Source of the DNA: Rebecca billardiae RCC1528
Lineage: Eukaryota; Protista; Haptophyta
DNA length: 64,000 nucleotides
Direction of reading: 5' to 3'
NCBI GenBank assembly: GCA_965240325.2
Contig: OZ260671.1
Span: forward strand, 31,031 to 95,030
In this document: piece after piece, positions 1 through 64,000 of the stretch
How the letters are laid out: every line of letters starts with the position of its first letter
How positions within the stretch are numbered: position 1 is the first letter of the stretch
Notes under the pieces: generated by a model
The model's input: only the letters and a program-made list of their open reading frames with translations
Databases searched by the model: none
Told to the model about the DNA's origin: nothing
Translations under genes and position numbers: made by a program

Positions 1-1940
1 ACGAATTTTCATATTTATCATCCGATAAAGAAGAAAACTTAGTTTTAGCCGCCGGCGATACTAGAGTTAACAAAGCTGGTTTTATTGAAAGTGAAGACCT
101 TCCGGTACGTTATCAACGTGAGTTTTTAACGGTATCTCCTACTAAAGTTGACTATTTAGCTGTTTCTCCGATTCAGATATTCTCGATTGCATCTTCTCTA
201 ATCCCCTTCTTAGAACATGATGATGCAAACCGAGCGCTTATGGGTTCGAATATGCAACGCCAAGCTGTTCCTTTACTTTACCCTGAAAGACCTTTAGTTG
301 GTACTGGATTAGAATCTCATATTACGCGTGATTCTAGTATGGTTGTTGTTAATGAACAGCCAGGTATTGTAAAGTATGTCGCCTCGGATAAGATCGTTGT
401 TCGTTCTAAAACCGTTGAAACCATATACAGCTTAGAAAAATATAAAAAATCTAACCAAGAAACTTGTATTACACAGAAGCCTATTGTTTGGACTGGGGAA
501 CGAGTTGAACGCGGCCAAATTATTAGTGAAGGTACTGCTTCTTGTGGAGGAGAGCTGGCACTTGGAAAGAATATTCTCCTTGCTTATATGCCATGGGAAG
601 GTTATAACTATGAAGATGCGTTCATGGTTAGCGAACGCCTTGTTTTAGATGATATATATACCTCTTTACATATTGAGAAATTTGAAGTAGAAGTCCGACA
701 GACAAAAGCTGGCGTTGAAGAATTAACTAAAAACATTGCTGGTATGTCCGAGCGTAATACAAAAGTTCTTGATGAAAATGGTATTGTCCGTTTAGGTTCT
801 TTTGTTGACTCTGGTGATATTCTAGTCGGTAAATTAACACCTAAAGAAGAAGAAGACCAATCACCTGAAGGTAAACTACTTCGTGCTATTTTTGGTGAAC
901 GTGAAAGAAATGTACGTGATACCTCTTTAAAGGTTCCTAATGGTGTAAAAGGAAGAATACTAGATATTCGTATTTTATCGCGTGAAAATGGTGATGACTT
1001 ACCGCCAGGAATAAATCAAGTTATCCGTATTTTCTTAGTAAAAATAAGAAAAATTCGCGTTGGTGATAAAATGGCCGGACGCCACGGTAATAAAGGTATT
1101 ATTTCATGTATTTTACCTGCTGTAGACATGCCATTTTTACCAGATGGTACTCCTATTGATGTCGTCTTAAATCCGTTAGGTATTCCTTCACGTATGAATG
1201 TAGGCCAACTTTTTGAATGTCTATTAGGTCTAGCTGCCGAGCACCTTAATAAGTTCTACCGCATTATGCCTTTTGATGAAATGCATTCACCAGAGGCTTC
1301 ACGAATTTTAGTTAACAAAAAATTACAAGAAGCGGCCCTAGTTAGTGGCCAACAGTGGATCTTCAATTCTAAACATCCTGGAAAACATAGACTGATAGAT
1401 GGTCGTACTGGTACCTATTTTGATAACCCAATCACTGTAGGTCGTAGTTATATGTTAAAGTTAATCCATTTAGTTGACGATAAGCTACATGCACGTTCTA
1501 CAGGTCCTTATTCACTAGTAACACAGCAACCGTTAGGTGGAAAAGCTCAGCATGGTGGTCAAAGGCTAGGTGAGATGGAAGTTTGGGCGTTAGAAGCTTT
1601 TGGAGCTGCTTACACCCTTCAAGAACTTTTAACTGTTAAGTCAGACGATATGGATGGTCGTAATGAAATGTTAAATGCTATTGTGAAAGGTCGTGATATA
1701 CCAAAACCAGGTATTCCTGAATCATTTAAAGTTTTATTACGCGAGCTTCAATCACTAAGTCTAGATATTTCCGCTTATAAGGTTGTTTCTGACGGCAACC
1801 AAAATTTCGAAGCTACAGAAGTCGATTTAATCTCTCCAATAAGACACGAATCTAATGCTTCGAGCCCTTACTTTAATAGTAAGTTGAATACATTCTCGAT
1901 GCCTTCCGACTCTTTTCCAGAAAAAGTCAATGAGTCTTAA
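1..1940 (+). CDS. rpoB: RNA polymerase beta subunit, 5'-partial (frame open from window start)
   Basis: [32 protein letters not shown] and [14 protein letters not shown] motifs. Confidence 0.99.
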
Positions 1941-1974
1941 ATGTACTATTTAAATATAATTTCATCTTTTTGAA

Positions 1975-3840
1975 ATGGTTAAATCAGAACAGTATTTTGA
2001 TTATATAAAGATAAAAATAGCTTCGCCTGAACGTATTAGAAGCTGGGGCCAACGTAAGTTACCTAACGGGTCAGTTGTTGGAGAGGTTACAAAACCAGAA
2101 ACAATAAACTATCGAACCCTTAAGCCTGAAATGGGTGGTTTGTTTTGTGAGCGCGTTTTTGGCCCTATTAAAGATTGGGAATGTCACTGTGGTAAGTACC
2201 GTCGTGTTCGAGATAAAGGTACAATATGTGAACGTTGTGGTGTCGAAGTGACCGAATCTCGTGTCCGCAGACAACGTATGGGTTATATTAATCTTTCAGC
2301 ACCGGTTACGCACATATGGTACTTAAAAGGTACACCTAGTATTATCTCCCACCTTTTAGGGATGCCACTAAAAAAGGTAGAGGAAATTGTTTACTTTGTC
2401 TCGTATGTGATCATTGAACCTGACAATTTTCCAGGCTTATCTTATAAACAACTCTTAAATGAGAATGAGTGGATTGCATTAGAAGATAAACTTTTTCAGC
2501 AAGAGCAACGTTTTAATGTCTTCTGTCAAATAGGTGCTGAGGCGATACTTTTACTACTGAAAGATCTTGACCCTAAAGATATGATAGCTCGTTTAAGAAC
2601 GAATATATTACTAGTAAATGATAAAGGTAAACGAGAAAAATGGATCAAACGTTTGAGAATTCTCGAAAACTTTGTCCATACAAATTCAGACCCCTCATGG
2701 GTTGTTTTAGATGTTCTTCCAGTTATACCCCCTGACTTAAGACCTATGGTGCAACTGGACAGTGGTAGATTCGCTACCTCGGATTTAAATGATCTTTACC
2801 GACGAATTATTAATCGTAATAATCGTCTCGAGCGCTTAAAAGAAATTCTGGCACCGGAAATTATAACCCGTAATGAAAAACGCATGCTGCAAGAGGCAGT
2901 TGATGCATTAATAGATAACGGAAAACGTGGGCGTACGGTTCTAGGTGTTAATAACAGGCCTTTAAAGTCCTTATCTGACATTATCGGTGGAAAGCAAGGC
3001 CGATTTAGACAAAACTTACTTGGTAAGCGAGTTGACTATTCAGGGCGTTCTGTTATTGTTGTTGAGCCTCAACTTTCACTGAACCAATGTGGGCTACCTA
3101 AAGAAATGGCACTAGAATTATTTCAGCCTTTTGTAATTCACCGTTTAATTCATGAAGGCCTTGTTAATAACATTAAGGCTGCGAAAAAGATGATTAAAAA
3201 CAAGAATTCTATTGTTTGGAGTGTTCTTGATGAAGTTATCGAAAACCACCCGATACTACTTAACCGCGCACCTACATTACATAGGTTAGGTATTCAAGCT
3301 TTTGAACCCGTTTTAGTCGAAGGCCGAGCAATTAAGCTTCATCCAATGGTCTGCCCGGCGTTTAATGCAGATTTTGATGGTGACCAAATGGCGGTCCATA
3401 TTCCTTTAACATTGGAGGCCCAAGCGGAAGCACGCTTTTTAATGCTCGCTCCAAGAAATTTCCTGTCGCCAGCGACAGGGGACCCCATTGTTTTACCTAC
3501 CCAAGATATGGTATTAGGGTGCTATTATTTAACATTGATGAGCCCAAATACACCTCTTAATAAAGATAAATACTTTTCTTCCCTTGAAGATGCTAAAGTT
3601 GCTTTTGAACACGGTTTAATTGAATTACAAACACCCATTTGGGTACGTTATGAAGGTTTCGTAAATGATGAAGATACAAAAGCTTTGAAAACGTTTAAAT
3701 ATAAAGACGGTAGTTTCACTAAAGTTTTTCAAAATAAATATTTAAAACAAGACGTTGAAGGTAATCTCATCAGCCAATACATGCGAACTACTGTAGGTAG
3801 GGTTCTTTTTAACCAAGTTTTAGATGGAGTAGTACAGTAA
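1975..3840 (+). CDS. rpoC1: RNA polymerase beta' N-terminal part (gamma)
   Basis: Zn-finger CHCGKY...CERCG and catalytic [12 protein letters not shown]. Confidence 0.99.
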
Positions 3841-3868
3841 AAATATTGTCATAAGTTTAATTCAAAAT

Positions 3869-6800
3869 ATGGGAAATTCTTGTGTATCGCGAGACACTTT
3901 ATTTACAAACAAAGTCGTCGATAAGCGTCAACTTAAAGGTTTAATGTCTGACTTATTTAATAAGTATGGCCCTTCGAAGTGTACTTACGTTTCTGATAAT
4001 TTAAAATTTTTGGGTTTCCATTTTGCAACCCAAGCTGGTCTTTCATTAAACGTTGAAGATTTACGTGTGCCTGATACTAAACGCCAAAATTTAGCTTTTG
4101 GTGAAAATTTTATCAGTGACGTTGAGGAATCTTTTGTTCGTGCTGATATTACTAGCGTAGACCGTTTCCAATATATCATCGATAAATGGAGTTCGATTAG
4201 TGATAAGGTAAAAGAAGAAGTAGTTAATTATTTCGTAAAGACGGACCCTTTTAACCCAATTTATATGATGGCGTTCTCCGGAGCACGAGGAAATTTATCA
4301 CAAGTTCGTCAGCTTATTGGGATGAGAGGGCTAATGGCCGACCCACAAGGCCAGCTTATAGGATTACCCATTAAAAGTAATTTCCGTGAAGGTCTAACAG
4401 TTACCGAATATATCATTTCTTCTTATGGTGCAAGAAAAGGTATTGTAGACACAGCTTTACGTACAGCTGACTCAGGTTATTTAACTCGACGTCTTGTTGA
4501 TGTTTCTCAAGATATTATCGTTCGTGCGTTTGATTGTGGTACTAGTCGGGGAATAAAAGCAGCAACAAACTCCAATATCACACTGCAAGGTCGTACTTTA
4601 CTAAAAGACTTATTTGATAACGAGGGAAATATAATCCTTAGTAAAGATAAGCAAATTAGCCGAAAAACAATAGAGTCTATAAAGACTAACAATATTAAAT
4701 ATATTGAGATTAGGTCATCTATTACCTGCAATTTAAACCATTCCGTATGCCAACTTTGTTATGGATGGAACCTGGCCACTAGAAAATTAATAGATCTTGG
4801 CGAAGCAGTTGGTATTTTAGCTGCTCAGTCGATTGGTGAACCTGGTACACAATTAACTATGCGTACATTCCATACAGGTGGTACCTTTATGGGGACTCTT
4901 TCAGACGCCGTGTACTCTTTTACCGCCGGAAAGGTAAGTGTAGTTGGAGATAAGAAAAAATTTATACCTGAAAAATTTTCTGAAAGCGATTGGGCTATTA
5001 AAGTAAAGCAAGATTCGTCTTTACAGTTAAAAACTACTACAGACCGATTAATCTCATTAAAAGTACCTGCAAATTCTACTTTACCTTTTGCGACTAATGG
5101 TTTAGAGGTGAAAAGAAATGAGGTTATTCTTAAGCCACCCATCATTGAATCTACTGGTTCTGAACAAGTGACAAAAAGAATATCTTCTGATAAAGAAGGT
5201 TTAGTTTTTTTAGACGGTTTAAGCCTCAAAGAAATAGAAGATAAAAACCAAAACAAGACTTTAATCGCCCAAAACCAAGGTTTTATATGGATTTGTTCTA
5301 GTAATGTGTTAAGTATTCCAACAAATGCGGAGGTTGAAGTTAAACCAGGGACTATTGTAAGAGAAAACAAATGCTTTGTTAAAGTAAATTTTTCAAATTC
5401 TTACGGGGGGTTTTGTTTAGATAGTGCTGATGATAGAGCATTTAATATTTTACTAACTTCATACTTCTTAGACGATAGCTTCGTTACCCGAACAGAAGAT
5501 AATAAATATATTCTTACTACTAAAGCAAACGAAAACTATTCCTTAGCTTTTACAAAGGTTTCTTATAGTGAAAATCTACAAATTATCGGCGAATCTAAGC
5601 CAAAACTTTCGTTTACGTACCAAAGTGGTCGAATTAAAATCGATTATTTACAAAACGAAAATGCTAGTAAATCAAAGATAGGTAGTCAGCCACCTGGTTC
5701 ATATATTCACTTAATTCCGGAATACTATTTCACAGTAGTCGCCACTTCAAAGCAGATTTTTGTTAAAGCTGGTGATTTTGTTGAAAAAGGTTTCGAACTT
5801 TTTACCGGAACTTTTTCCGAGCAACAAGGTATCGTTGACATACTTGAAGTCGACGAAGATACTTTTGATATTATCTTACGACCAGGGATACTGGTTGATT
5901 CAAATTCAACATTTAAGAATACTTTTTCAAAAAATAATAAAAAAATCATTTCTTACCCTCAGGGCCTAGAAATTGGAGAAGGTTTTTCAGAACCGGAATT
6001 TATATATGTAGAACAGTTAGTCTTCGAAGAAGGTAAACAGTCTTACCTAATTTCGCCCGTAGAAACGTCTTTTATACCGCCTGAAAAAGAACTGAGTTTT
6101 GCAAATAATTACCAGAGTAGCGATTTCCAAAAACCATTCCGTATTTTCGAAAAAACCGAAATTCTGGTTAATGAAGGCGATACAGTTAGGAATATTGATG
6201 AAAGTATACTTGTCTTAAAGCACCTCGTAATTGAATTTAATTTAATCCAAGGTAGGTTTAACGCAAATATAAAATTAGAAAAATTAGCAAATAAAAATAC
6301 GTTTGGATTAAAGGTAGATATTTTTGAAAAATTGAATACGTCTTTTGGTAAATTCAGCGCTGAATATATTCAGAATCAAAAACTCATCCATGAAAAACAG
6401 TATATTTATGGTTTAAGTAAAGCATACCAAAGCCAAATTCTTTCACAAGAGAAAAGTATTGTTACAGCATTAGAACGCATTTCATCAAATAAAAAACTAT
6501 TATGTTTAGCAAAAAAATCAGACTTCCAAATTTTCCAAAAAAACACGGACCAATTATTTAGCTCCAGAGAAAAATTAGCAAAAGATACCTATCTTTTTAT
6601 TCGACGTGGTGATAAGTTCAATAATAATAAAGTTGCACAAGCAGCAGGTCGATTAACGATTAAAGAATTCAAAGAAAACGGTGCTAGTTTTACGGTTCTG
6701 CAACGTGCTAAACCTTACTTAATTGCCAAAAATTCAATCCTAAAAGCAAAACAAGACTACCTTATTCATAAAAATGACTTGATAGCTTTCCTTACTTATG

Positions 6801-7687
6801 AAGTGGCGAAGACAGAAGATATCATACAAGGTTTACCTAAAGTTGAAGAGCTTCTTGAAGCTCGACCACCTAAAAATAAATCTATTATTTCAACAATTCC
6901 TGGTTACGTGTCAGTAGTTTCAAAAATTGAAAATGAATATCCTGAAAGTAATGAATTAGTAACAATTAATGTAAAAAATCAAGGTAACCTCGAAGAGAAA
7001 TATACAGTACCGAAACTTAGAAAAATAGTAAAAACTGGCGATTTTGTAAACTTAGGAGATCGTTTAACAGATGGTCAAGTAGACCTTCGTGAACTATTAC
7101 AAGTAATTTTTGATTTTTATAGATCTATTTTAAAGCTAGACAACTATAGCGCCTCATTAAAAAGTTTCAAACAAATCCAGATGATTCTCATAAGCGAGAT
7201 TCAAAATGTTTACAAATCCCAAGGTGTTGATATCTCTGATAAGCATATCGAAATTATAGTTCGACAAATGACTCAAAAAGTCAGGGTAGAAGATAGTGGA
7301 AAAACTACATTAGTTCCAGGAGAACTTGTTGATTTAGAGAAGATTCGTCGTATTAATGTCATTGCGGATTTCCAAGGCTATGAAACAGCAACATATACTC
7401 CAATACTTTTAGGAATAACTAAAGCTTCTTTAAGTACAGATAGTTTTATTTCGGCAGCAAGTTTCCAAGAAACAGCTCGTGTATTAACAAAAGCAGCTGT
7501 TGAAGGTAAAAAAGACTGGTTAAAAGGATTAAAGGAAAATGTAATTGTTGGCCGCCTTATCCCTGCCGGAACTGGTTTTAAGCCAAACCAAATAAAAACT
7601 AACCTTCAAAAAGAAGATGAATCCGTTACTAATGACTTAAATATGGATGCATTAATACTAGACAAACGTATTAAAAATCTAGAATAA
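3869..7687 (+). CDS. rpoC2: RNA polymerase beta'' subunit
   Basis: TADSGYLTRRLVDV, QSIGEPGTQLTMRTFHTGG, SFISAASFQET; long divergent central insertion. Confidence 0.99.
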   Translation: MGNSCVSRDTLFTNKVVDKRQLKGLMSDLFNKYGPSKCTYVSDNLKFLGFHFATQAGLSLNVEDLRVPDTKRQNLAFGENFISDVEESFVRADITSVDRFQYIIDKWSSISDKVKEEVVNYFVKTDPFNPIYMMAFSGARGNLSQVRQLIGMRGLMADPQGQLIGLPIKSNFREGLTVTEYIISSYGARKGIVDTALRTADSGYLTRRLVDVSQDIIVRAFDCGTSRGIKAATNSNITLQGRTLLKDLFDNEGNIILSKDKQISRKTIESIKTNNIKYIEIRSSITCNLNHSVCQLCYGWNLATRKLIDLGEAVGILAAQSIGEPGTQLTMRTFHTGGTFMGTLSDAVYSFTAGKVSVVGDKKKFIPEKFSESDWAIKVKQDSSLQLKTTTDRLISLKVPANSTLPFATNGLEVKRNEVILKPPIIESTGSEQVTKRISSDKEGLVFLDGLSLKEIEDKNQNKTLIAQNQGFIWICSSNVLSIPTNAEVEVKPGTIVRENKCFVKVNFSNSYGGFCLDSADDRAFNILLTSYFLDDSFVTRTEDNKYILTTKANENYSLAFTKVSYSENLQIIGESKPKLSFTYQSGRIKIDYLQNENASKSKIGSQPPGSYIHLIPEYYFTVVATSKQIFVKAGDFVEKGFELFTGTFSEQQGIVDILEVDEDTFDIILRPGILVDSNSTFKNTFSKNNKKIISYPQGLEIGEGFSEPEFIYVEQLVFEEGKQSYLISPVETSFIPPEKELSFANNYQSSDFQKPFRIFEKTEILVNEGDTVRNIDESILVLKHLVIEFNLIQGRFNANIKLEKLANKNTFGLKVDIFEKLNTSFGKFSAEYIQNQKLIHEKQYIYGLSKAYQSQILSQEKSIVTALERISSNKKLLCLAKKSDFQIFQKNTDQLFSSREKLAKDTYLFIRRGDKFNNNKVAQAAGRLTIKEFKENGASFTVLQRAKPYLIAKNSILKAKQDYLIHKNDLIAFLTYEVAKTEDIIQGLPKVEELLEARPPKNKSIISTIPGYVSVVSKIENEYPESNELVTINVKNQGNLEEKYTVPKLRKIVKTGDFVNLGDRLTDGQVDLRELLQVIFDFYRSILKLDNYSASLKSFKQIQMILISEIQNVYKSQGVDISDKHIEIIVRQMTQKVRVEDSGKTTLVPGELVDLEKIRRINVIADFQGYETATYTPILLGITKASLSTDSFISAASFQETARVLTKAAVEGKKDWLKGLKENVIVGRLIPAGTGFKPNQIKTNLQKEDESVTNDLNMDALILDKRIKNLE

Positions 7688-11343: not shown

Positions 11344-12210
11344 TTAATCCTCAAAAACACGACTCTTTAAAATATCCTCAGCTTGGATAGTAACAAGGTC
11401 CGATTTAGTTAGAACATCTTGGTTCGATGAGAAGATACGGTTAGCTTGACGCATACGGCTTCTATCTAATGCGTTACGGATGCTTCGAGCATTTGCAAAA
11501 TGTGGAAGCCCACGTCTACGATCAATATACTTAAATAGTGCATCTTCCGCATCTGGCGTTAACACATATTGCTGTTCATCTAGAATAAGTTTTCCGATTT
11601 GTACAAGCTCTTCTGGCGTGTAATCTGGGAAGTCGACGTGGTTAGCAACACGAGAGGATAGTCCAGGGTTAGATTCATAGAATTTATCCATTTTTTCTTT
11701 ATAACCTGCGAAAATCATAACAAGCTCATCACGCTTATTTTCCATTACCTGTAGGATAATTTCAATGGCTTCTGAACCATAGTCACGCTCGTTATCTGGC
11801 TTGTATAAGTAGTAAGCTTCGTCGATGAATAATACACCACCCATAGCGTTCTTTAGTACTTGCTTAGTTTTTGGTGCAGTGTGTCCGATGTACTGACCTA
11901 CAAGATCATCACGTGTAACAGTTAAAAGTTGAGCCTTCTTAATGTAATTTAAGCGATATAAAATGTCGGCCATCTTTTCTGCAACTGTAGTTTTTCCAGT
12001 ACCAGGACTTCCTGTAAATGACATGTGTAGACCTGGACTAGATGAAGTAAGGCCTAGGTTTTTTCTTAAGCGGTGCACTAATAGAAGCGCGGCGATTTCT
12101 TTAATTCTTTGCTTTACTGGGCGAAGCCCTACTAGATCAGTTTCTAATTGGTCTAGAAGCTCTTGAATTTGAGTGTTTTTATATTCTTCCTGTAAATTTA
12201 ATGAAGACAT
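11344..12210 (-). CDS. cbbX: Red-type Rubisco activase CbbX (AAA+)
   Basis: [49 protein letters not shown]. Confidence 0.98.
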
Positions 12211-19327: not shown

Positions 19328-20311
19328 ATGATAAAATCTCAGATAGACTCAACGAGCAGCCTGGCCAAACTTCATATTGAGTCATTAGAATCTCGATGTG
19401 ATGGACCCCGATCACTATACGAAAAATTCACGATATACCCATTAGAAAAAAACCAAGGTATTACCATAGGTAATGCTCTACGACGAGTTTTGCTTTCAGA
19501 TATTGAAGGAGTAGCATTTACAGCTGTACGTTTTAATAATGTAGATCACGCTTTTGCAACAATAGCTGGAGTAAGAGAAGATGTTTTAGATATACTATTA
19601 AATGTAAAACAAATAGTACTGAAAAGCACCGACGAACTCATAGACAATAAAAGCTTAATAGGTAGATTAAGTGTCCAAGGCCCAGAAATTATTACATCAA
19701 ACTTAATAGAATTACCCCCCGGAATCGAAATTGTAGACAAGGAGCAATATATAGCGACTGTATGTGACAACGAGAATTTTGAGATGGAGTTTGTAATACA
19801 AAAAAACAAAGGGTATAAGTTATCGGACGAAATTGAATTGGAAAAAAGTTTCGATGATTTTATAAGCATTGACGCTAGATTTACCCCAATAGTAAAGGTA
19901 AATTTCGAAATTGAAAAAATACTTATAGAAAAAGGTGAAACTAAAGAAAAAATCAATTTTGACGTATATACAAACGGAAGTATCCATCCAGAAGAAGGTT
20001 TAAAACGAAGCACTGGACTTTTAACAACAGTATTTGAATCATTAACGACAAAACCAGTCTCAAAAAATGAAGCAACTGCTGAAGAAGAAGAAAAAGAAGT
20101 AGTTGCTGAAATTTTAATTGAAGAGATACCTATTTCTGTCCGAGCATACAATTGCTTAAAAAGAGCACAAATCAATACAATAAATGATTTAATTAATTAT
20201 TCTAGGGAAGAACTTCTTGAAATAAAAAATTTCGGACGAAAGTCTGTAGATGAGGTTATTTTGGCCCTGGAAAAACGCTTTAATATAAAAATAAGTGACG
20301 AAAAAGAATAG
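19328..20311 (+). CDS. rpoA: RNA polymerase alpha subunit
   Basis: GITIGNALRRVLLS, SVRAYNCLKRA, KNFGRKS. Confidence 0.98.
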   Translation: MIKSQIDSTSSLAKLHIESLESRCDGPRSLYEKFTIYPLEKNQGITIGNALRRVLLSDIEGVAFTAVRFNNVDHAFATIAGVREDVLDILLNVKQIVLKSTDELIDNKSLIGRLSVQGPEIITSNLIELPPGIEIVDKEQYIATVCDNENFEMEFVIQKNKGYKLSDEIELEKSFDDFISIDARFTPIVKVNFEIEKILIEKGETKEKINFDVYTNGSIHPEEGLKRSTGLLTTVFESLTTKPVSKNEATAEEEEKEVVAEILIEEIPISVRAYNCLKRAQINTINDLINYSREELLEIKNFGRKSVDEVILALEKRFNIKISDEKE

Positions 20312-20333
20312 ATATTTATTATAAAAATTACAC

Positions 20334-20729
20334 ATGAGTACTTTTTTATCTGTAGGGCGAAGAAAAAGTTCTATAGCACAAATACGCCTAGTAAATAATG
20401 GGTCAGGAAAGATATCAGTAAACGGGAAAGTTATTGAAGAATATTTTCAATACATTCCAAACTACTTGGATGCAGCATTACAACCACTAAAGCTTATTGG
20501 TGGGGAAACTAGTTACGATATTGTAATTAAAACAAAAGGTGGAGGCCTTGCTGGTCAATCACAAGCAATTAAGTTAGGTATAGCCCGAGCTTTATGTACC
20601 GTGATACCAGAGAACCAACAATTACTACTTCGATCGTTAAATCTATTAACGCGTGATCCTAGGGTAAAAGAGAGAAGAAAGTATGGTTTAAAAAAGGCAC
20701 GTAAGGCACCTCAGTTCTCAAAGCGTTAA
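20334..20729 (+). CDS. rps9: 30S ribosomal protein S9
   Basis: GRRKSSIA, KERRKYGLKKARKAPQFSKR. Confidence 0.99.
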   Translation: MSTFLSVGRRKSSIAQIRLVNNGSGKISVNGKVIEEYFQYIPNYLDAALQPLKLIGGETSYDIVIKTKGGGLAGQSQAIKLGIARALCTVIPENQQLLLRSLNLLTRDPRVKERRKYGLKKARKAPQFSKR

Positions 20730-42748: not shown

Positions 42749-43159
42749 TTACATTTCACGAGACACGAAGCGTGTCTTTATAGGTAATTTATAAGCTGCA
42801 TTACGTAATGCATTGTAAGCAACTTGCTTCGAAACACCATTCATTTCGAATAAAATTTTACCAGGTTTTATTACACAAACCCAATATTCAGGAGTACCTT
42901 TACCTGAACCCATACGTGATTCGGCAGCACGCTCAGTAATAGGCTTGTCAGGGAAAACACGAATCCATAATTTTCCAGTACGTTTAACGAATCTCGTGAT
43001 TGTTCGGCGGGTAGCCTCGATTTGTCTAGATGTTAACCAAACAGGCTCTAAAGCCTGAAGACCAAAATCCCCAAAGCTTAACTTATTTCCACGACAAGCT
43101 GTACCTTTTAAACGACCTCTATGTTGTTTACGATACTTAACTCTTTTAGGACTTAACAT
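42749..43159 (-). CDS. rpl16: 50S ribosomal protein L16 (start corrected to MLSPKR)
   Basis: [22 protein letters not shown]. Confidence 0.98.
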
Positions 43160-43228
43160 GTGACTAATAATTAATTTATAAAATATTGCTTTATTAGATA
43201 TAAAAAGCAAGATGAAGGTTTGAAATTA

Positions 43229-43897
43229 CTAAACGGTAGCCGACTCAAAGCGGCCAAAGTTTTTAGTAGATACAAGATCCTTAAAGACCCAAACTTTAAC
43301 ACCAAGAATTCCATACATAGTAGGTGCTTTAACAGAAGCGTAGTCTATATCTGCACGTAATGTTTGAAGAGGAACTCGGCCTTCACGAAGCCACTCAACA
43401 CGAGCAATTTCTGCACCATTTAAGCGTCCACCAACCTGGATTTTAACTCCTTTAACAACCGAAAGAGGGACTTTAGTTAAAGCTTGGCGTACTGCCTTTC
43501 TAAAAGCTACACGTTTACTTAATTGTTGAGTAATTGATTGAGCAATAAGTTGCGCATCAGCCTCCGGGTTTTGTACTTCGATAATATTAATTCGAATAAC
43601 TTGAGAAGTCTTTGTAATTTTTTTAATGTAAGACTTTATTTCATTTAGAGACTCACTGCCTCGGCCAAATAGTAAGCCAGGCTTTGCTGTATGTAAAAAA
43701 ATTTCAACTTGTATTGGAGTTCTATGGATTATAACTTTTGCTAAACCACAATCATATAATTTAGTTTCTATTGCTTGGCGTATAATGAAATCTTCTTTCA
43801 ATGAAGAAACATAATCAAACTTATTAGTGAACCAAGCACTCTTATGAGATTGACTAATACCAAGCCTAAAGCCCGAAGGATGTACTTTTTGACCCAT
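43229..43897 (-). CDS. rps3: 30S ribosomal protein S3
   Basis: [27 protein letters not shown]. Confidence 0.99.
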
Positions 43898-43939
43898 TTA
43901 GGTTTTCATTCCATTAATTAAATTTAAAAATCCACGATT

Positions 43940-44308
43940 TTACTTTACCGAAGAAAGTCGAAGCGTGATATGGCATGTAGGTTTATGTATTCTGAAACCT
44001 CTACCCTGAGCACGCGGTCGGAAGCGTTTTAAAACTGGCCCTTTATCAACATAGGCTTCTTTTAAAACAAGATCCTTTTTTGAGATGTTGTATTTAACTT
44101 TTGCATTAGCTGCTGCAGAAACTAAAACTTTATAGATAGGATCGCAACTTTTATACGGCATAAATTTTAGAATCTTGCTTGCCTGAGCAAAATCTTTTCC
44201 TCGGATCTGGTTCAACACACGTTGAACCTTTGTAGGAGACATACGAACAAATCGTGCAGTAGCTCCCACTTCTTTTTTATTATCAAATACTTGATCTATC
44301 GAACTCAT
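43940..44308 (-). CDS. rpl22: 50S ribosomal protein L22
   Basis: KRFRPRAQGRG...TCHIT. Confidence 0.98.
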   Translation of the reverse strand: MSSIDQVFDNKKEVGATARFVRMSPTKVQRVLNQIRGKDFAQASKILKFMPYKSCDPIYKVLVSAAANAKVKYNISKKDLVLKEAYVDKGPVLKRFRPRAQGRGFRIHKPTCHITLRLSSVK

Positions 44309-44332
44309 AACGGCTTTAAAAATGAATAAATG

Positions 44333-44608
44333 TTATCTTTTTACTTTTTTATCTTTTTTATGAGATTTAAAAGTACGAGTAGGTGAGAATTCACCTAATT
44401 TATGACCAACCATTTGGTCTGAAACATAAACAGGTATATGTGAACGACCATTATAAACAGCAATAGTATGACCAATCATTGAAGGCATAATAACAGAAGA
44501 ACGTGACCATGTTTTTACCATATCCTTCTTACCGCCTTCATTAAGAGATTGGATTTTTTTAGCAAGGTGTGCAGCCACAAAAGGACCTTTTTTTGCTGAA
44601 CGACTCAT
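44333..44608 (-). CDS. rps19: 30S ribosomal protein S19
   Basis: [20 protein letters not shown]. Confidence 0.99.
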
Positions 44609-44644
44609 AAATTTATCTAATCTTAACTAAAAATTAATTGGGAT

Positions 44645-45478
44645 TTAACGAGAGCGGTGACGTAAGATATAATCTTCACTCTTCTTTTTATTTCGGCGAG
44701 TTTTGACACCTAAAGCTACTTTACCCCATGGTGTTACAGGTCGGGCACGTCCGATAGGAGAACGTCCTTCACCACCACCGTGTGGGTGGTCTACAGGGTT
44801 CATAACAACACCACGTACGGTAGGTCTTCGGCCCAGCCAACGCTTACATCCAGCTTTACCATAGACACGTTGGTTTACTTCAACGTTACCTACTTGGCCT
44901 ATTGTTGCTAAACATTGTTCTGGGATTAGGCGGACCTCTGTTGACGGTAGCTTTAACGTTGCAAAACCACCTTCTTTCGCAATGATTTGAGCACCTGCAC
45001 CTGCAGCACGAGCGATTTTACCACCTTGATTAGGGATAAGTTCAACATTATGCACAAATGAACCTAATGGAATAGAAGAAAGTGGTAATGTATTACCCAC
45101 TTCAATAGGTGCACTGTCTTTTGACCAAAGGATGGCCCCTTTTTCTAAGTATCTTGGAGAGAGAATGTATTTTTTCTCACCGTTTTCATAGTGTAGTAAA
45201 GCAATATGAGCATTACGGTTCGGGTCATATTCAAAAGAAGCTACGCGCGCTGGAACATCGCTCATAGATCTCTTAAAATCAACAATACGATATCTCTGTT
45301 TGTGCCCACCACCTAAATGTCTTACTGTAATACGACCAAAGTTATTACGCCCTTTACAAGAGTGAAGTTTTCCAGTAGTTAATTTTCGCTGAGGCTTTAC
45401 TTTACTAAGACCAGCAAAACTAATTGTTGCTTTATTCCTTGTTCCTGGACTACAAGGCTTTGCTATTTTAATAACCAT
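44645..45478 (-). CDS. rpl2: 50S ribosomal protein L2
   Basis: EYDPNRNA, MNPVDHPHGGGEGR. Confidence 0.99.
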   Translation of the reverse strand: MVIKIAKPCSPGTRNKATISFAGLSKVKPQRKLTTGKLHSCKGRNNFGRITVRHLGGGHKQRYRIVDFKRSMSDVPARVASFEYDPNRNAHIALLHYENGEKKYILSPRYLEKGAILWSKDSAPIEVGNTLPLSSIPLGSFVHNVELIPNQGGKIARAAGAGAQIIAKEGGFATLKLPSTEVRLIPEQCLATIGQVGNVEVNQRVYGKAGCKRWLGRRPTVRGVVMNPVDHPHGGGEGRSPIGRARPVTPWGKVALGVKTRRNKKKSEDYILRHRSR

Positions 45479-45529
45479 AAATAATTTCTTAAAAGCTAAG
45501 GTGTTTATGAGAAATAAACCAAATAGTAT

Positions 45530-45832
45530 CTATTCTTCAGGGAACAGTTGTATCTTTTGGTTTGCTTCAAGAGTAATGATAGCCTTTTTAAAGCGAGACT
45601 GATTACCAATAAAACGACCGATTCGTCTAGTTTTTACTGGTAAATTAATAGTATTTACTTTCTTTATTTTCACATTGAAAAGCTTTTCAAGTGCAAGCTT
45701 AATTTCAGGTTTTTTAGCTTTTGGGCTAACTAAAAAACTGTACTGATTATTATTAATCAAACCAACAGTCTTATCACTTAAAAGAGGCTTTTTGATAATT
45801 TCTGTATCTATTTGCATTTTCTTTGTTTCCAA
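45530..45832 (-). CDS. rpl23: 50S ribosomal protein L23 (start TTG 45832 or ATG 45817)
   Basis: KPEIKLALEKLFNVK, KKAIITL; position in operon. Confidence 0.95.
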   Translation of the reverse strand: METKKMQIDTEIIKKPLLSDKTVGLINNNQYSFLVSPKAKKPEIKLALEKLFNVKIKKVNTINLPVKTRRIGRFIGNQSRFKKAIITLEANQKIQLFPEE

Positions 45833-45852
45833 AAATTTTTGCTTGTTAAAAA

Positions 45853-46446
45853 CTAAGCAATTTTTACTAAATTACCTCTCTTACCAGGTACAGAACCTTT
45901 TAAAACTAGTAAATTGTTTTCGATATCAATATCAACAACTTGTAAATTTTTAATAGTAACTGTATTACCACCTAAACGACCAGGCATTTTTTTACCTGGA
46001 AAAACACGACCTGGTGTTGCACAAGCACCAATAGAACCAGGAGCTCTATGGTTTTTTGAACCGTGAGCCATAGGTCCACGACCGAAATGGTGGCGCTTAA
46101 TAGTACCTGCAAAACCTTTACCAATAGATTTTGATGTAACTTGAACGGTTTGGCCAATTTCAAATTGTTCAACAGTAATTAATTGACCAACTTCATACTC
46201 TTCAGTGGAAGTAACACGAAATTCTTTTAAGTACTTTAGTGGCGTAACTTGTAACTTTTCAAAATATTTTTTCTTTGAATGGCTTAAAGCTTTCTCTGGG
46301 ATTTCTTTATACCCAAGCTGTACAGCACTATAATCTTTTAACAATTGTGTGACATGGCATGGGCCTGCACTTAAAACTGTAACAGGAACACGCGAGCCAG
46401 TATCATCAAAAATCTGGGTCATCCCCAGTTTGCTACCTAACATCAT
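45853..46446 (-). CDS. rpl3: 50S ribosomal protein L3
   Basis: KLGMTQIF, GPMAHGSKNHRAPGSIG. Confidence 0.99.
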   Translation of the reverse strand: MMLGSKLGMTQIFDDTGSRVPVTVLSAGPCHVTQLLKDYSAVQLGYKEIPEKALSHSKKKYFEKLQVTPLKYLKEFRVTSTEEYEVGQLITVEQFEIGQTVQVTSKSIGKGFAGTIKRHHFGRGPMAHGSKNHRAPGSIGACATPGRVFPGKKMPGRLGGNTVTIKNLQVVDIDIENNLLVLKGSVPGKRGNLVKIA

Positions 46447-48892: not shown

Positions 48893-49011
48893 ACTCGATC
48901 TTAGTTTATTTTCACAGAAAGTCCCCCTTCTACTATCTTAACCACAGCAAGCCTTAACTATTGAGTTCGGGATGGTATCACAGTGTTTTTCTTGCCTCGC
49001 GAAGATCGAGT
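48893..49011 (-). rRNA. rrf: 5S rRNA, highly divergent
   Basis: 119 nt directly 3' of 23S; closing helix ACTCGATCTT/AAGATCGAGT; loop C motif CCATCCCGAAC. Confidence 0.9.
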
Positions 49012-49028
49012 ATAAAAAGAAATAATTA

Positions 49029-49155
49029 AGTCAAGTTTTCGGTCTATTAGTATATCTCAGCTAAATGCATTACTGCACGTACACTTGATACCTATCAAAC
49101 GGTTAGTCTAACCGTGACCTTAATCCTTTAAGGATGAGAGCACTCATCTTGAGTA

Positions 49156-49191
<36 letters not shown>

Positions 49192-49313
49192 CTACACATA
49201 GCTACCCAGCGTTTACTGTTGGCACAATAACTGGTACACCAGAGGTGTATCTTTCCCGGTCCTCTCGTACTAAGGAAAGCTTCTCTCAATGCTCTAACGC
49301 CTACACCGGATAT

Positions 49314-49361
<48 letters not shown>

Positions 49362-49397
49362 CATGGGCGAACAGCCCAACCCTTGGGACGTACTACC

Positions 49398-49438
<41 letters not shown>

Positions 49439-49642
49439 TCCGTCGATATGAACTCTTGGGAGAGATCAGCCTGTTATCCCTAGAGTAACTTTTATCCGTT
49501 GAGCGACACTCCTTCCACTCGGTAGTGTCGGATCACTAAGGCCGACTTTCGTCTTTGCTCGACTTGTAGGTCTCGCAATCAAGCTTCCTTATACCTTTGC
49601 GCTCGAAGGTTGATTTCCAACCAACCTGAGGAAACCTTTGCA

Positions 49643-49692
<50 letters not shown>

Positions 49693-49943
49693 AAAATGGT
49701 CCCTCAGCCGGATAACGGTCTGAGGTTAGAATTCTAGTCTTACAAGAGTGGTATCTCACGAATGACTCCAGAACCCCCGAAGAGATTCCTTCTTAGTCTC
49801 CCACCTATTCTGCGCATGCAAAACGTGAAAACAATTTCAAGCTACAGTAAAGCTTCATAGGGTCTTTTTGTCCAGGTGCAGGTAGTCCGCCTCTTCACAG
49901 ACATGTCTATTTCGCCGAGTCTCTCTCTGAGACAGTGCTCAGA

Positions 49944-50036
<93 letters not shown>

Positions 50037-50799
50037 TAGTTATCAGCTTCTTCAAAGAATAACCAACTTCTTAAACCTTCCGGCACTGGGCAGGCGTCAG
50101 CCTCCATACATCGTTTTACAACTTAGCGGAGACCTGTGTTTTTGATAAACAGTCGCCTGAGCCTGGATTTTGCAACCCTTTGCAGGGTACCTCTTCTTCC
50201 GAAGTTACGAGGTCATTTTGCCGAGTTCCTTAGAGAGAGTTATCTCGCGTCCCTTGGTATACTCTACCTACCTACCTGTGTCGGTTTCGGGTACAGGTCT
50301 TTATTACTTAAGATATTAAAAGCTTTTCTTGGAAGCCGGACTTTAACTCATTCGGTATAATTACTATACCTACCCATCATGCCTTAGCTCAAGACGTTTT
50401 CACCGTCTCTCAACACCTCGAACACTTAGACCGATAACCAACATTCGGCGAGTATGGCCTTCTTCGTCCCTCTATATCAGTAATAAAAAGTACAGGAATA
50501 TTAACCTGTTGTCCATCGCCTACGCTTTTCCGCCTCGGCTTAGGTCCTGACTAACCCCCCGCGGACGAGCCTTCCGGAGGAACCCTTAGGTTTTCGGGAT
50601 ATTGGATTCCCACCAATATTTTCGCTACTCAAACCAACATTCTCACTTCTATCCAATCCACACCCACTTTCGTTAGTGCTTCAATTCGGTATAGAACGCT
50701 CCCCTACCGATATTTATGTTATATCCTACAGCTTCGGCATATGACTTAGCCCCGTACATTTTCGGCGCAGGATCACTCGAACAGTGAGCTATTACGCAC

Positions 50800-50836
<37 letters not shown>

Positions 50837-51395
50837 TTGTTTCAGAATTCCCACCTCCTTTATCACTTAGTCATAATTTAGGGGCCTTAGCTAGTAGTCT
50901 GGGCTGTTTCCCTCTTGACAATGGAGCTTATCCCCCACAGTCTGACTGGTTAACTATAAATGTTCAGTATTCTTAGTTTGCTACGATTTGGTACCGCGTT
51001 AGCAGCCCGCACCGAAACAGTGCTTTACCCCTGAACTCAAACATTAACCGCTGTGCCAAAACACATTTCGGGGAGAACCAGCTAGCTCCGGATTCGATTG
51101 GCATTTCACCCCTAACCACAACTCATCCGCTGTTTTTTCAACAACAGTCGGTTCGTACCTCCACTTAGTGTTACCCAAGTTTCACACTGGCCATGGTTAG
51201 ATCATCCGGGTTCGGGTCTGTAAATAGTGACGACGCCCTATTAAGGCTCGCTTGCACTGTGGCTCCGGTATAACCTTAACCTGCCACTACCTACAAGTCG
51301 CCGGCTCATACTTCAACAGGAACGAAGTTAGACGTTATAGTCGTCCTTCTACTGCTTGTAAGCTTTCGGTTTCATGTTCTTTTCACTCCCCTCCC

Positions 51396-51429
<34 letters not shown>

Positions 51430-51909
51430 GCACTATCGATCATTCAGTAATATTTAGTCTTACGAGGTGGTCCTCGCAGATTCAAAGGGGGCTTCACTTA
51501 TCCCCTCCTACTTGGGAAAAAGACAAATATTTTATTTTGTTTTCGATGACAAGGCTATCACTTTCTATGGCGCGTTATTCCAAACGCTTTATCTAACAAT
51601 TAAAAATATTTTTAAAGTCTCTCCCACAACCCTAAACTTATATGTTTAGTTTAGACTGTTCCCGTTTCGCTCGCCGCTACTAAGAGAATCGCTATTGCTT
51701 TCTTTTCCTCCGGTTACTTAGATGTTTCAGTTCACCGGGTTCGCTCTTTTTAATCTATATATTCGAAAAAAAAGTATTAAGAGTTTCCTCATTCGGGAAT
51801 CTCCGGATCTAAGCTTGTTTCCAGCTCCCCGAAGTGTTTCGTCGGTAACCACGCCCTTCATCGCTTCTGAATGTCTAGGTATCCACCCAAAGCTCTTATT
51901 AACTTGACT
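49029..51909 (-). rRNA. rrl: 23S rRNA (ends approximate)
   Basis: Sarcin-ricin loop AGTACGAGAGGACC and peptidyl transferase motifs; ends flanked by a 21-bp inverted repeat (49017-49037 / 51901-51921). Confidence 0.98.
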
Positions 51910-51936
51910 TAATTATTTCTTTATTTTTTTTTTGTT

Positions 51937-52009
51937 TGGAGATAAGCGGATTCGAACCGCTGACATCTGCCGTGCAAAGGCAGCGCTCTACCAACTGAGC
52001 TATATCCCC
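51937..52009 (-). tRNA. trnA: tRNA-Ala(TGC)
   Basis: rRNA spacer; GGGGATA acceptor with G3:U70; intronless. Confidence 0.98.
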
Positions 52010-52012
52010 GGT

Positions 52013-52039
52013 TGGGCTATTCTGGATTTGAACCAGAGT

Positions 52040-52086
<47 letters not shown>
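52013..52086 (-). tRNA. trnI: tRNA-Ile(GAT)
   Basis: rRNA spacer; CTGATAA loop; intronless. Confidence 0.98.
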
Positions 52087-52130
52087 AACACAAATTGTGT
52101 TGATTTCAGGATTGTTTTTTTTGTCTCCTT

Positions 52131-52243
52131 AAAGGAGGTGATCCAGCCGCACCTTCCAGTACGGCTACCTTGTTACGACTTCACCCCAGTCATCAGCCCT
52201 ACCTTAGGCGAACCCTTGCGGGTAACGACTTTGGGTATGACCA

Positions 52244-52286
<43 letters not shown>

Positions 52287-52545
52287 AATTCACCGCCGTA
52301 TGCTGACCGGCGATTACTAGCGATTCCAGCTTCATGCAGGCGAGTTTCAGCCTGCAATCCGAACTTAGGCTAAGTTTGTGAGATTTGCTAGCTTTCGCAA
52401 GTTTGCTTCTCTTTGTCTTAACCATTGTAGCACGTGTGTAGCCCAAGATATAAGGGGCATGCTGACTTGACGTCATCCTTACCTTCCTCCCGCTTTTCAC
52501 GGGCAGTATCTTTATAGTCCCCCACTTAAGAATGGCAAATAAAGA

Positions 52546-52611
<66 letters not shown>

Positions 52612-52696
52612 CCACCTGTATCTAGGTTCCCGAAGGCACTTTCTCGATTAAGAGAAATTCCTAGTATGTCAAATCTTGGTAAGGTTCTTCGCGTTG

Positions 52697-52758
<62 letters not shown>

Positions 52759-52848
52759 CACTTGCGTGCGTACTCCCCAGGCGGGATACTTAACGCGTTA
52801 GCTACGACACCGCAGGTAAACCCGCAACATCTAGTATCCATCGTTTAC

Positions 52849-52883
<35 letters not shown>

Positions 52884-53359
52884 ACCCTAGCTTTCGTCTC
52901 TGAGTGTCAGTAATGGCCCAGTAGGACGCCTTCGCTAATGGTGTTCTTCCTAATATCTACGCATTTCACCGCTACACTAGAAATTCCTCCTACCCCTACC
53001 ATACTCAAGTTTAGCAGTTTCTGTCGCACCCCTGAAGTTGAGCTTCAGTTTTTAACAACAGACTTACTAAACCACCTGCAGACGCTTTACGCCCAGTGAT
53101 TCCGGATAACGCTTGCATCTCCCGTATTACCGCGGCTGCTGGCACGGAATTAGCCGATGCTTATTCCCCAAGTACCGTCAGAACTTCTTCCTTGGGAAAA
53201 GAGGTTTACGACCCACGAGCCTTCATCCCTCACGCGGTATTGCTCCGTCAGGCTTTCGCCCATTGCGGAAAATTCCCCACTGCTGCCTCCCGAAGGAGTC
53301 TGGGCCGTATCTCAGTCCCAGTGTGGCTGCTCATCCTCTCAGACCAGCTACTGATCGTG

Positions 53360-53395
<36 letters not shown>

Positions 53396-53552
53396 AGACG
53401 CGAGCTCATCTCCAGGCAGATTATTAAATCTATTTCACCAAAGGCATATGGGGTCTTTTATACCCCTCCTAGAGGCAGATTCTCACGTGTTACTCACCCG
53501 TTCGCTACTCAAATTTAAAAAATTTGCGTTCAACTTGCATGTGTTAGGCATA

Positions 53553-53588
<36 letters not shown>

Positions 53589-53591
53589 AAA
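52131..53591 (-). rRNA. rrs: 16S rRNA (ends approximate)
   Basis: AGAGTTTGATCCTGGCTCAG at 5' end, GTGCCAGCAGCCGCGGTAA, anti-SD ATCACCTCCTTT at 3' end. Confidence 0.99.
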
Positions 53592-53675
53592 TTTATATTC
53601 TTTGTTTTTAATTATTTTTCCTGTCCTCTTTAAAGATTTCATCAATCAAATTGAATCAACCTTCGTATGATTAGT

Positions 53676-62104: not shown

Positions 62105-62169
62105 AGATTAATTTTTTTTTGTAAAAATACTTCTTATTTCAGTTTTTATTTACAGTCTTTAATATAGTA

Positions 62170-64000
62170 TTAGCCTACTGAGATGATTCTTGCTTCGAAG
62201 AATGCCCAAGTTGTACCAATACCTCCTAGAAGGTAGTGAGCTAATCCTACTGCACGTCCTTGAGTAATACTTAGTGCACGAGGCTGAATTGATGGAGCTA
62301 GCTTAAGCTTGTTGTGAGCCCAAACAACTGATTCAATAAGCTCTTGCCAGTATCCTCGACCACTGAATAAGAACATTAAACTAAACGCCCAAATAAAGTG
62401 TGCACCTAAGAATATTAGTCCGTAAGCTGATAAAGCTGATCCGTAAGATTGGATAACTTGTGAAGCTTGCGCCCATAAGAAATCACGTAGCCAACCATTA
62501 ATAGTAATAGATGAGTTTGTGAAGTTTCCTCCAGTAATGTGTGAAACTGCTCCGTCTTCTGAAACACTACCCCAAACATCCGACTGCATTTTCCAGCTGA
62601 AGTGGAAGATTACTACAGAAATTGAGTTGTACATCCAGAAAAGCCCAAGGAATACGTGGTCCCAAGCAGAAACTTGACATGTTCCTCCGCGCCCTGGTCC
62701 ATCACAAGGGAAACGGAAACCTAGGTTTGCTTTATCTGGAATTAGTCTTGAACTACGTGCAAATAAAGTACCTTTAAGAAGAATTAGTACTGTTACGTGA
62801 ATTGTAAATGCGTGAATATGGTGTACCATGAAGTCCGCAGTACCTAAGTAAATAGGCATCATAGCTACTTTTCCATTTACACTAACAACATCACCACCAA
62901 AAGCGTAACTTGTAGTTGCTAGAGCGTTTGGTGCAGTTCCTTGGTTAGCAATAGTGTGTAAACTTTGAACCCATTTAGCAAAAATTGGCTCTAGCTTAAT
63001 TGCTGAATCAGAGAACATGTCCTTAGATCTACCTAATGCACGCATAGTATCGTTGTGGATGTATAGACCAAAACTGTGCATACCTAAGAAGATACAAACC
63101 CAGTTTAAGTGAGAAATAATTGATTCTCTGTGTCTTAGTACACGATCTAGTAGGTTGTTGTATGACTGTGTTGGGTCATAGTCACGTACCATAAAGATAG
63201 ATGCGTGAGCACCAGCACCTACAACACAGAAACCACCAATCCACATGTGGTGAGTGAACATCGATAGTTGTGTTGCGTAATCTGTAGCTAGGTAAGGGTA
63301 AGGTGGCATTGCATACATGTGGTGTGCAACGATAATACTTAGTGACCCCATCATAGCTAGGTTAATAGCTAGTTGAGCATGCCAAGAAGTTGTTAAGATC
63401 TCATAGAGACCTTTGTGACCTTCACCTGTAAAAGGCCCTTTGTGTCCTTCTAAAATTTCTTTTAGTGAGTGACCAATGCCCCAGTTTGTACGATACATGT
63501 GACCAGCAATGATGAATAAACATGCAATTGCTAAGTGGTGGTGTGCAGTATCGCTTAACCAAAGTCCACCAGTTACCGGGTTTAAACCAGATTTAAATGT
63601 TAGGAAATCTGAATAAGCTCCCCATTCAAGCGTAAAGAAAGGAATCAGACCTTGCTTAAAGCTTGGGTATAGCTGGTTCATTAGTTCGTGGTTCGAAATA
63701 AACTCGTAAGCACGAGGTAGTTCTTGTGGTGAAATACCTGCATCTAAAAGTTTATTGATCGGTAGCGCAATGTGAATCTGGTGACCCGCCCACGCAAGAG
63801 AACCTAAACCTAAAAGTCCTGATAAGTGGTGGTTTAACATTGATTCAACGTTTTGGAACCATTCTAGCTTTGGTGCAGATTTGTGGTAGTGGAACCATCC
63901 AGCAAATAGCATTAAAGCTGACATAAATAATCCGCCGATAGCTGTCCAGTAAAGTTCAACTTCGTTTGTAATACCAGCACCGCGCCAAATTTGGAAGAAT
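62170..64000 (-). CDS. psaA: Photosystem I P700 apoprotein A1, 5'-partial (continues past the window end)
   Basis: [19 protein letters not shown]; frame open to window end ([14 protein letters not shown]). Confidence 0.99.

Follow-up and report, generated by a model that had tools for sequence, protein, structure and literature searches.

Plastid genomes of the haptophyte class Pavlovophyceae are known from Diacronema (Pavlova) lutheri, the only species covered by the pavlovophyte plastome papers that we found in the literature (NC_020371 from strain CCMP1325 and MT364382 from strain NIVA-4/92; 95,281 bp). Among the 13 haptophyte plastomes tabulated in the 2023 Ochrosphaera paper, rpl4, rpl13, rpl18 and rpl29 occur in none, rpl24, rpl1, rpl11 and rps20 only in Pavlomulina, and rpoZ and ycf66 are both confined to the pair of D. 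lutheri strains (PMC10341766 Table S3). The genes chlL, chlN and chlB of dark chlorophyll synthesis were recorded there for Ochrosphaera only, with further detection by polymerase chain reaction in Chrysotila and Ruttnera, and are lacking from both D. lutheri plastomes (PMC10341766); in haptophytes they are thus on record for a few benthic prymnesiophytes only. Table 2 of Hovde et al. 2014 likewise gives "ORF140, ycf66, ORF208, ORF66, rpoZ ..." (ORF, open reading frame) for Pavlova lutheri and for no other haptophyte plastome (PMC4226036). Here we describe a stretch of plastid DNA of 64,000 bases (assembly GCA_965240325.2, contig OZ260671.1, positions 31,031 to 95,030 of the forward strand), referred to below as the window, which carries both rpoZ and ycf66 and was compared with D. 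lutheri, with environmental plastome contigs and with the other haptophyte classes.

The first-pass annotation had interpreted the window as a mosaic plastid of a possibly deep-branching lineage, uncultured or environmental, and had named a pavlovophyte among several options. In our reading, to which we give a probability of roughly 0.93, the window is a segment of the plastid genome of a pavlovophyte (Pavlovophyceae, Pavlovales, Haptophyta) belonging to a species other than D. lutheri. This affiliation builds on which genes are present, on their order, on how the sequences cluster and on the clade into which they fall, each of them observed directly. The pavlovophyte option was the right one, and the headline of a deep-branching mosaic was not supported, since a haptophyte plastome with both rpoZ and ycf66 is what the literature describes for Pavlovales and gives no evidence of a new deep lineage, the gene order is that of D. 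lutheri and the sequences fall into a tight pavlovophyte cluster. No new lineage has to be invoked for the odd gene combination, and the assembly carries a normal Pavlovales plastome, which provides the second genus-level plastome for a class with only D. lutheri published.

The rpoZ and ycf66 signature

Both genes of the signature are present in the window, as had been claimed (coordinates of all features are collected in Table 1). The call of ycf66 is straightforward by its Pfam match; its product is 66% identical to that of the D. lutheri gene at the same position, and the gene was found on the environmental contig L089 too. The rpoZ gene has diverged; it matches the RNA polymerase omega model of NCBIfam, NF001574, with an E-value of 2.9e-8, under the curated cutoff, and gives no Pfam match. 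Its product is 71% identical to that of the syntenic D. lutheri gene, which is annotated as rpoZ in GenBank (QKE31112/AGE93758). The order of accessions in D. lutheri (ycf66 ... petL_2, one gene, rpoZ, two genes, tufA) fits ycf4-rpoZ-rpl19-rps10-tufA, so that the annotated D. lutheri rpoZ is the 71%-identical ORF syntenic with the one in the window. It should be added that an rpoZ-like ORF of 65 amino acids (aa) is also present on L089. Among the features claimed beforehand, this predicted rpoZ is the weakest gene call, its match being significant but below threshold.

The idea that the combination is foreign to prymnesiophytes agrees with the haptophyte tables, which give both genes to D. lutheri only. 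That ycf66 is typical of ochrophytes, as stated in the first-pass annotation, receives support from a table in a brown-alga plastome study, which marks the gene in its first seven columns only, presumed to be heterokont plastomes (PMC2765969). Pavlovales is thus a known order whose described member also carries rpoZ and ycf66.

Apart from the pavlovophyte-type loci, a ycf66 directly following clpC was seen on a 9-kb contig with a guanine-plus-cytosine (GC) content of 34% (L028, MDTC01038426.1), which belongs to the red plastid lineage and is not of pavlovophyte type (ClpC 70% and ycf66 47% identical to the window). The adjacency of clpC and ycf66 would therefore either predate the pavlovophytes or be common to an ochrophyte-like lineage.

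Colinearity with Diacronema lutheri and environmental plastomes

Loci of D. lutheri were recognised by an rbcL identical to YP_007476240 (L001 and L003), by RpoC1 M1KFU7_DIALT (L103) and by PsaC (L114). Wherever these four loci overlap the window, its genes stand in the same order, including the neighbourhoods ycf4-rpoZ-trnM-rpl19 and ycf66-clpC, and the DNA blocks of window positions 48289-28371 align to D. lutheri in one orientation. The two plastomes have in common the losses of rpl4, rpl13, rpl18, rpl24 and rpl29, the presence of rpoZ and ycf66 at the same positions, a c-type rpl36, cbbX, a diverged ycf27 by dnaK, abutting trnI and trnA genes and the same 85-nt tRNA(CAU). The sole difference seen in order is that D. 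lutheri has additional ORFs inserted between psaC and ycf19.

Environmental relatives were found by look-up of the window PsaC, which is identical in D. lutheri. Nine further plastid contigs from metagenomes, 82-98 kb in length, contain rbcL, the reduced ribosomal cluster up to rpl3, ycf45 and psaC in the same order, and those extending past psaC continue with ycf19-rrn-ycf12-atpB-atpE-ycf27-like-dnaK, as far as each of them reaches. The contig L089/L105 (Ga0181567_10000030, 91,784 bp) is colinear with the window from rps2 to clpC. Order and content as in the window were likewise found for L117 and L109, which represent its sister lineages. Gene order has thus been kept in no fewer than four or five deep lineages of pavlovophytes, and so have rpoZ, ycf66 and the diverged ycf27.

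These contigs also show that public metagenomes contain many complete plastomes of pavlovophyte type without a taxonomic label: at least nine near-complete ones of 82-98 kb, from four or five deep lineages, were counted in samples of JGI (e.g. 3300018418 and 3300023108) and in ENA records beginning GROS21, KRAE22 and TIMM21.

Sequence identity to relatives

Clustering of the sequences agrees with the gene order. In the best 120 matches of RpoC1, 34 pavlovophyte-type proteins, D. lutheri among them, are 87-94% identical to the window protein, and the next-best ones are cryptophytes (Guillardia, Teleaulax, Rhodomonas and Hemiselmis) at 70-71% and cyanobacteria at 69%. No labelled prymnesiophyte or Pavlomulina RpoC1 was found among these 120, all non-pavlovophyte entries being cryptophyte or cyanobacterial, and a prymnesiophyte RpoC1 would therefore score below the listed cyanobacterial proteins. 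The 16S rRNA gene of the window is 95.0-96.6% identical to those of eight pavlovophyte-type loci (96.0% to D. lutheri) and 86.7% identical to that of the cryptophyte-like contig L009; for 23S, identity to pavlovophyte-type loci is 92.9-97.2%.

At the level of DNA, the window and D. lutheri are about 75% identical over 19.5 kb, and near-identity to a described plastome was thus not found. Protein identities to D. lutheri vary widely, from 62% for RpoC2, 66% for Ycf66 and 73% for rpoA, through 86% for ClpC and 88% for RpoC1, up to 93% for TufA, 96% for both RbcL and PsbB and 100% for PsaC. The DNA of the environmental relatives is 77-84% identical to the window, with the nearest other DNA at about 83%; L117 (Ga0255784_10000042, 91,814 bp) shows 88% protein identity over 3,418 columns, and the RpoC1 of L109 (ENA k141_122500) is 94% identical.

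For rbcS, five proteins at 92-94% identity were found, one of which, P0174 (93%), is a transcript from an MMETSP culture transcriptome, and hence the clade of the window probably has a cultured member. Pavlovophytes in MMETSP besides P. lutheri include Pavlova sp. CCMP459, P. gyrans, Exanthemachrysis gayraliae and Pavlovales sp. CCMP2436.

ClpC was also tried as bait for pavlovophyte loci and was set aside, the matches listed being cryptophyte-like, cyanobacterial and ochrophyte-like contigs; these served only as the source of the rDNA outgroup L009. The ClpC of the window is as similar to those of cryptophytes (85%) as to that of D. lutheri.

Phylogenetic position and alternative affiliations

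The tree of RpoC1 unites the 34 pavlovophyte-type proteins in a single clade at 100% support in the SH-aLRT (Shimodaira-Hasegawa-like approximate likelihood ratio test), within which the window pairs with P0047. A concatenation of RpoB, RpoC1, RpoC2, Rps2, PsbD, PsbC, CbbX and PsaL (4,480 columns) placed the window with L109, of the P0047 lineage, at 92/94. The tree of 16S and 23S joined the window and L117 at 88/91, with a trichotomy at the base, and 17 proteins of the rbcL-ribosomal-atpB region (3,427 columns) recovered the same pair at 100/100, D. lutheri being found there in a different clade (100/99) with L116, L119 and L121. Pavlovophyte-type plastids thus comprise no fewer than four or five lineages of comparable depth, and the one with the window does not include Diacronema.

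Some observations weigh against the pavlovophyte reading. Membership of the crown group rests on D. lutheri, on unlabelled contigs and on one unlabelled MMETSP transcript, and the identity of DNA to D. lutheri is low, as given above. Furthermore, the best maximum-likelihood tree of the rpo proteins shows the window plus L109 as the sister group of the remaining pavlovophyte-type lineages at weak support (48/84), and midpoint rooting of the ribosomal-protein tree puts the root on the same branch. One may therefore think of a new, undescribed deep-branching relative of haptophytes, or of an unsampled sister to all known Pavlovophyceae, the more so as the window proteins are confined to the Logan assemblies of four runs, several of them being singletons at 90% clustering, and the nearest other DNA is as distant as stated. 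We regard this as improbable. The root is unsupported, and alternative rootings stand: approximately unbiased (AU) tests do not reject a nested window (p 0.32 and 0.29), and the branch to the Guillardia-type outgroup has a length of 3.85 in the rpo tree. The pavlovophyte-type lineages are about equidistant from one another (16S 95-96.6%), and the stem leading to any outgroup exceeds the ingroup branches about tenfold. Moreover, gene content and order are of the published Pavlovales type, and the rbcS from an MMETSP culture points to a clade that is probably cultured. Within the class, the window together with L109 and L117, two lineages known from metagenomes only, may, with rather low probability and though nothing requires it, form the earliest-diverging clade of Pavlovophyceae plastids, one without a published plastome.

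Two further affiliations are far less probable still. Leptophytes (DPL2) also have c-type rpl36 and lack rpl4, rpl18 and rpl29 (PMC12816646), and the Rappephyceae, or rappemonads, of the Pavlomulina type are haptophytes with knob scales, as pavlovophytes are; both groups were weighed by published descriptions and tables rather than by direct alignment of sequences. Pavlomulina ranunculiformis resembles the window in its c-type rpl36 and in the lack of rpl4, rpl13, rpl18 and rpl29. It has, however, rpl24, rpl1, rpl11 and rps20 and two inverted rRNA repeats, and it has neither rpoZ nor ycf66, whereas the window leaves 17 bp between rpl14 and rpl5, too short for rpl24, and carries both rpoZ and ycf66. 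A lineage sister to all haptophytes would also not be expected to share 96% of 16S and the same gene order with D. lutheri. The rappemonad option of the first-pass annotation was consequently excluded, and a leptophyte or rappephyte origin is hardly conceivable. It is just as remote that the window comes from D. lutheri, whose plastome is already described, or from a close congener. Gene order is the same, GC contents are alike (36.8% vs 35.6%) and RbcL and PsaC are nearly or fully identical, but the identity of DNA, of RpoC2, of Ycf66 and of rpoA is far too low, the ORF insertion between psaC and ycf19 is missing in the window, and the trees give D. lutheri a different, well-supported clade. 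A cryptophyte plastid was rejected too, all five rpl genes, which cryptophytes retain, being absent at their positions and RpoC1 being only 70-71% identical to named cryptophytes. The first-pass annotation was correct in finding a gene set that is neither that of prymnesiophytes nor that of cryptophytes.

The mosaic appearance of the Pavlovales plastome would then reflect ordinary differential retention of ancestral plastid genes. Both rpoZ and ycf66 are ancestral plastid genes, and both lie among conserved neighbours (ycf4-rpoZ-trnM-rpl19 and ycf66-clpC). Retention and loss appears the simplest account: both genes would have been kept in Pavlovales and lost in the other two haptophyte classes, which we infer in preference to transfer. 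The Prymnesiophyceae (Emiliania, Phaeocystis, Chrysochromulina and others) resemble the window in the same rpl losses, the c-type rpl36, cbbX and a similar size and GC content; they differ by the lack of rpoZ and ycf66 and by the possession of an inverted repeat, ycf65, rpl34, secG and ycf80. According to the gene map, rpl34, secG/ycf47, ycf80 and ycf65 were not found within the 64-kb window.

Make-up of the window and annotated features

The window comprises about two-thirds of a red-lineage plastid genome, with a GC content of 36.8% and no N. The gene map, built from six-frame ORFs, ARAGORN (tRNA) and Rfam (rRNA), holds 72 protein, 16 tRNA and 3 rRNA genes, with about 88% of the sequence coding. 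Since the window is 100% identical to Logan contigs assembled independently from four runs (ERR14847148-51), the sequence is not an accident of assembly; genes between 1869 and 28454 carry precomputed Pfam families on the matching Logan loci. The source assembly consists of 41 pieces and represents the nuclear genome of a single organism, not an environmental bin.

Genes follow each other in the order partial rpoB, rpoC1, rpoC2, rps2, trnW, psbD, psbC, cbbX, psaL, groEL, rpl21, rpl27, psaD, trnS, rps16, trnP, trnH, psaJ, psaF, ycf60/tic20, rps6, rpl36, rps13, rps11, rpoA, rps9, rpl31, rps12, rps7, tufA, rps10, rpl19, trnM, rpoZ, ycf4, petL, psaM, psbK, psbZ, trnD, ycf66, clpC, petD, petB, ccsA, psbV, trnM, tatC, petA, rps4, trnL, trnV, psbH, psbN, psbT, psbB, rbcS, rbcL, rps5, rpl6, rps8, rpl5, rpl14, rps17, rpl16, rps3, rpl22, rps19, rpl2, rpl23, rpl3, ycf45, psaC, ycf19, trnK, 5S-23S-trnA-trnI-16S, ycf12, trnY, trnR, atpB, atpE, diverged ycf27, trnL, dnaK, trnF, psaB and partial psaA.

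Table 1. Positions of the annotated features in the window and the basis of each call.
Feature	Position	Strand	Basis or remark
Window segment, Pavlovales-type plastid genome	1..64000	.	partial rpoB to partial psaA
rpoB (C-terminal 646 aa), rpoC1 (1975-3840), rpoC2 (3869-7687)	3..7687	+	Pfam on identical Logan locus L007
cbbX, red-type Rubisco activase	11344..12210	-	TIGR02880 equivalog, 508 bits (cutoff 459)
rpl36, horizontally acquired c-type (type B, non-zinc), 47 aa	18311..18454	+	NF002021, 83 bits (cutoff 70)
rpoA then rps9	19328..20729	+	Pfam; 22-bp spacer
Diverged rpoZ (RNA polymerase omega), 65 aa	24046..24243	-	between trnM(CAU) and ycf4
ycf66, 127 aa	25954..26337	+	Pfam Ycf66_N, 79 bits; adjoins clpC
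rbcL-rbcS operon, red-type (form ID) Rubisco	37838..39821	-	rbcL 38355-39821, rbcS 37838-38257
S10-spc cluster, 13 genes rpl3 to rps5, without rpl4, rpl29, rpl24, rpl18	40024..46446	-	Pfam on every gene
rRNA operon 16S-trnI-trnA-23S-5S	48893..53594	-	Rfam and ARAGORN; single-copy genes on both sides
Strongly diverged ycf27 (OmpR/RpaB-type response regulator), 225 aa	56692..57369	+	between atpE and dnaK

rpl36 and the missing ribosomal protein genes

The window carries the general marks of a haptophyte plastome, a c-type rpl36 together with the lack of rpl4, rpl13, rpl18 and rpl29. The rpl36 gene, announced as horizontally acquired by the first-pass annotation, indeed passes the cutoff of the corresponding NCBIfam model and is also matched by Pfam Ribosomal_L36. 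In the plastids of cryptophytes and haptophytes, the c-type paralog stands in place of the plastid-type gene, and the same replacement has been reported for leptophytes (PMC12816646).

The five missing rpl genes had been reported correctly as well. The S10-spc cluster reads rpl3-rpl23-rpl2-rps19-rpl22-rps3-rpl16-rps17-rpl14-rpl5-rps8-rpl6-rps5; at the usual positions of rpl4, rpl29, rpl24 and rpl18 these genes are absent, with spacers of 35, 26, 17 and 52 bp, respectively, the third of which, between rpl14 and rpl5, is where rpl24 of a Pavlomulina-type plastome would be expected. Only 22 bp separate rpoA from rps9, and rpl13 is therefore absent too; D. lutheri and L089 have the same junction. 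Neither of the largest unassigned gaps of the window (600 and 331 bp) has an ORF longer than 43 aa. The composition of the cluster is identical in D. lutheri and in nine environmental plastome contigs. In the brown-alga plastome table, 18 genes, including these five, are absent from one column, presumed to be a haptophyte (PMC2765969).

An extra ORF between rps8 and rpl5 was seen in L119 (2953-3441, 162 aa) and L121 (3022-3492, 156 aa), both of the D. lutheri clade; it has no Pfam family, and no lineage other than these two shows a gene in this interval.

Rubisco, cbbX and private substitutions

The claims of form ID rbcL-rbcS and of cbbX held. The rbcL product scores 920-996 bits against structures of red-type Rubisco from red algae, diatoms and related organisms and about 610 bits against green-type ones; entries such as 1BWV and 1IWA we take to be red-type. 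Apart from passing the equivalog cutoff, cbbX matches the CbbX structures 3ZUH and 3SYL in the Protein Data Bank (E 1e-121), and its product is 92% identical to that of D. lutheri. Unusual residues, also pointed out beforehand, are real in rbcL and psbC, with 4 and 13 private substitutions, respectively, against the other pavlovophyte-type sequences; they are modest in extent, mostly being conservative.

The cbbX gene was called at 354 aa in L089 (2881-3945) and L105 (19321-20385), and at 287-288 aa elsewhere, the window and D. lutheri included; the longer form represents either an N-terminal extension or a start-codon artefact.

Other loci

One rRNA operon is present in the 64-kb window, between the same single-copy flanks as in D. 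lutheri, and at least 31 kb of the plastome lie outside the window; the operon would be single-copy in this plastome. According to ARAGORN, trnA(UGC) and trnI(GAU) abut without a spacer in the window (51937-52087, minus strand), in L114 (16229-16379) and in L117 (13904-14054).

The ycf27 gene stands out by its divergence. It matches Pfam Trans_reg_C with 30 bits and the RpaB model of NCBIfam with 51 bits, far under the cutoff, and the genes at the same position in relatives are only 30-35% identical to it, with neighbouring atpB at 91-92%. The counterparts were located in L113 (19189-19872), L115 (19089-19772), L116 (19086-19766), L117 (18881-19597) and L118 (18996-19679); in D. lutheri, judged by the order of accessions, ycf27 adjoins dnaK. 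These identities point to a gene that evolves far faster than its neighbours. Its receiver domain looks degenerate, because no domain other than the C-terminal DNA-binding one can still be recognised.

A tRNA gene of 85-87 nt that has the anticodon CAU, A73 and a long variable arm (a class-II-like body) is located in the window at 23934-24020 on the plus strand. It may serve as tRNA-Met or, once modified with lysidine, as tRNA-Ile. It was also found in L003 (15509-15593), L089 (15646-15730), L090 and L091, its size being kept in D. lutheri and the environmental plastome; other tRNA(CAU) genes of the fetched loci measure 74-77 nt.

Finally, the insertion that D. lutheri has between psaC and ycf19 (L114, 10248-12137) is a block of about 2.4 kb with extra ORFs of 76, 140, 208 and 78 aa, as called on L114, which correspond to orf66/orf208/orf140/orf69 of its annotation. 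This block, which appears peculiar to D. lutheri, is lacking in the window (48289-48356) and in those environmental contigs that reach beyond psaC.

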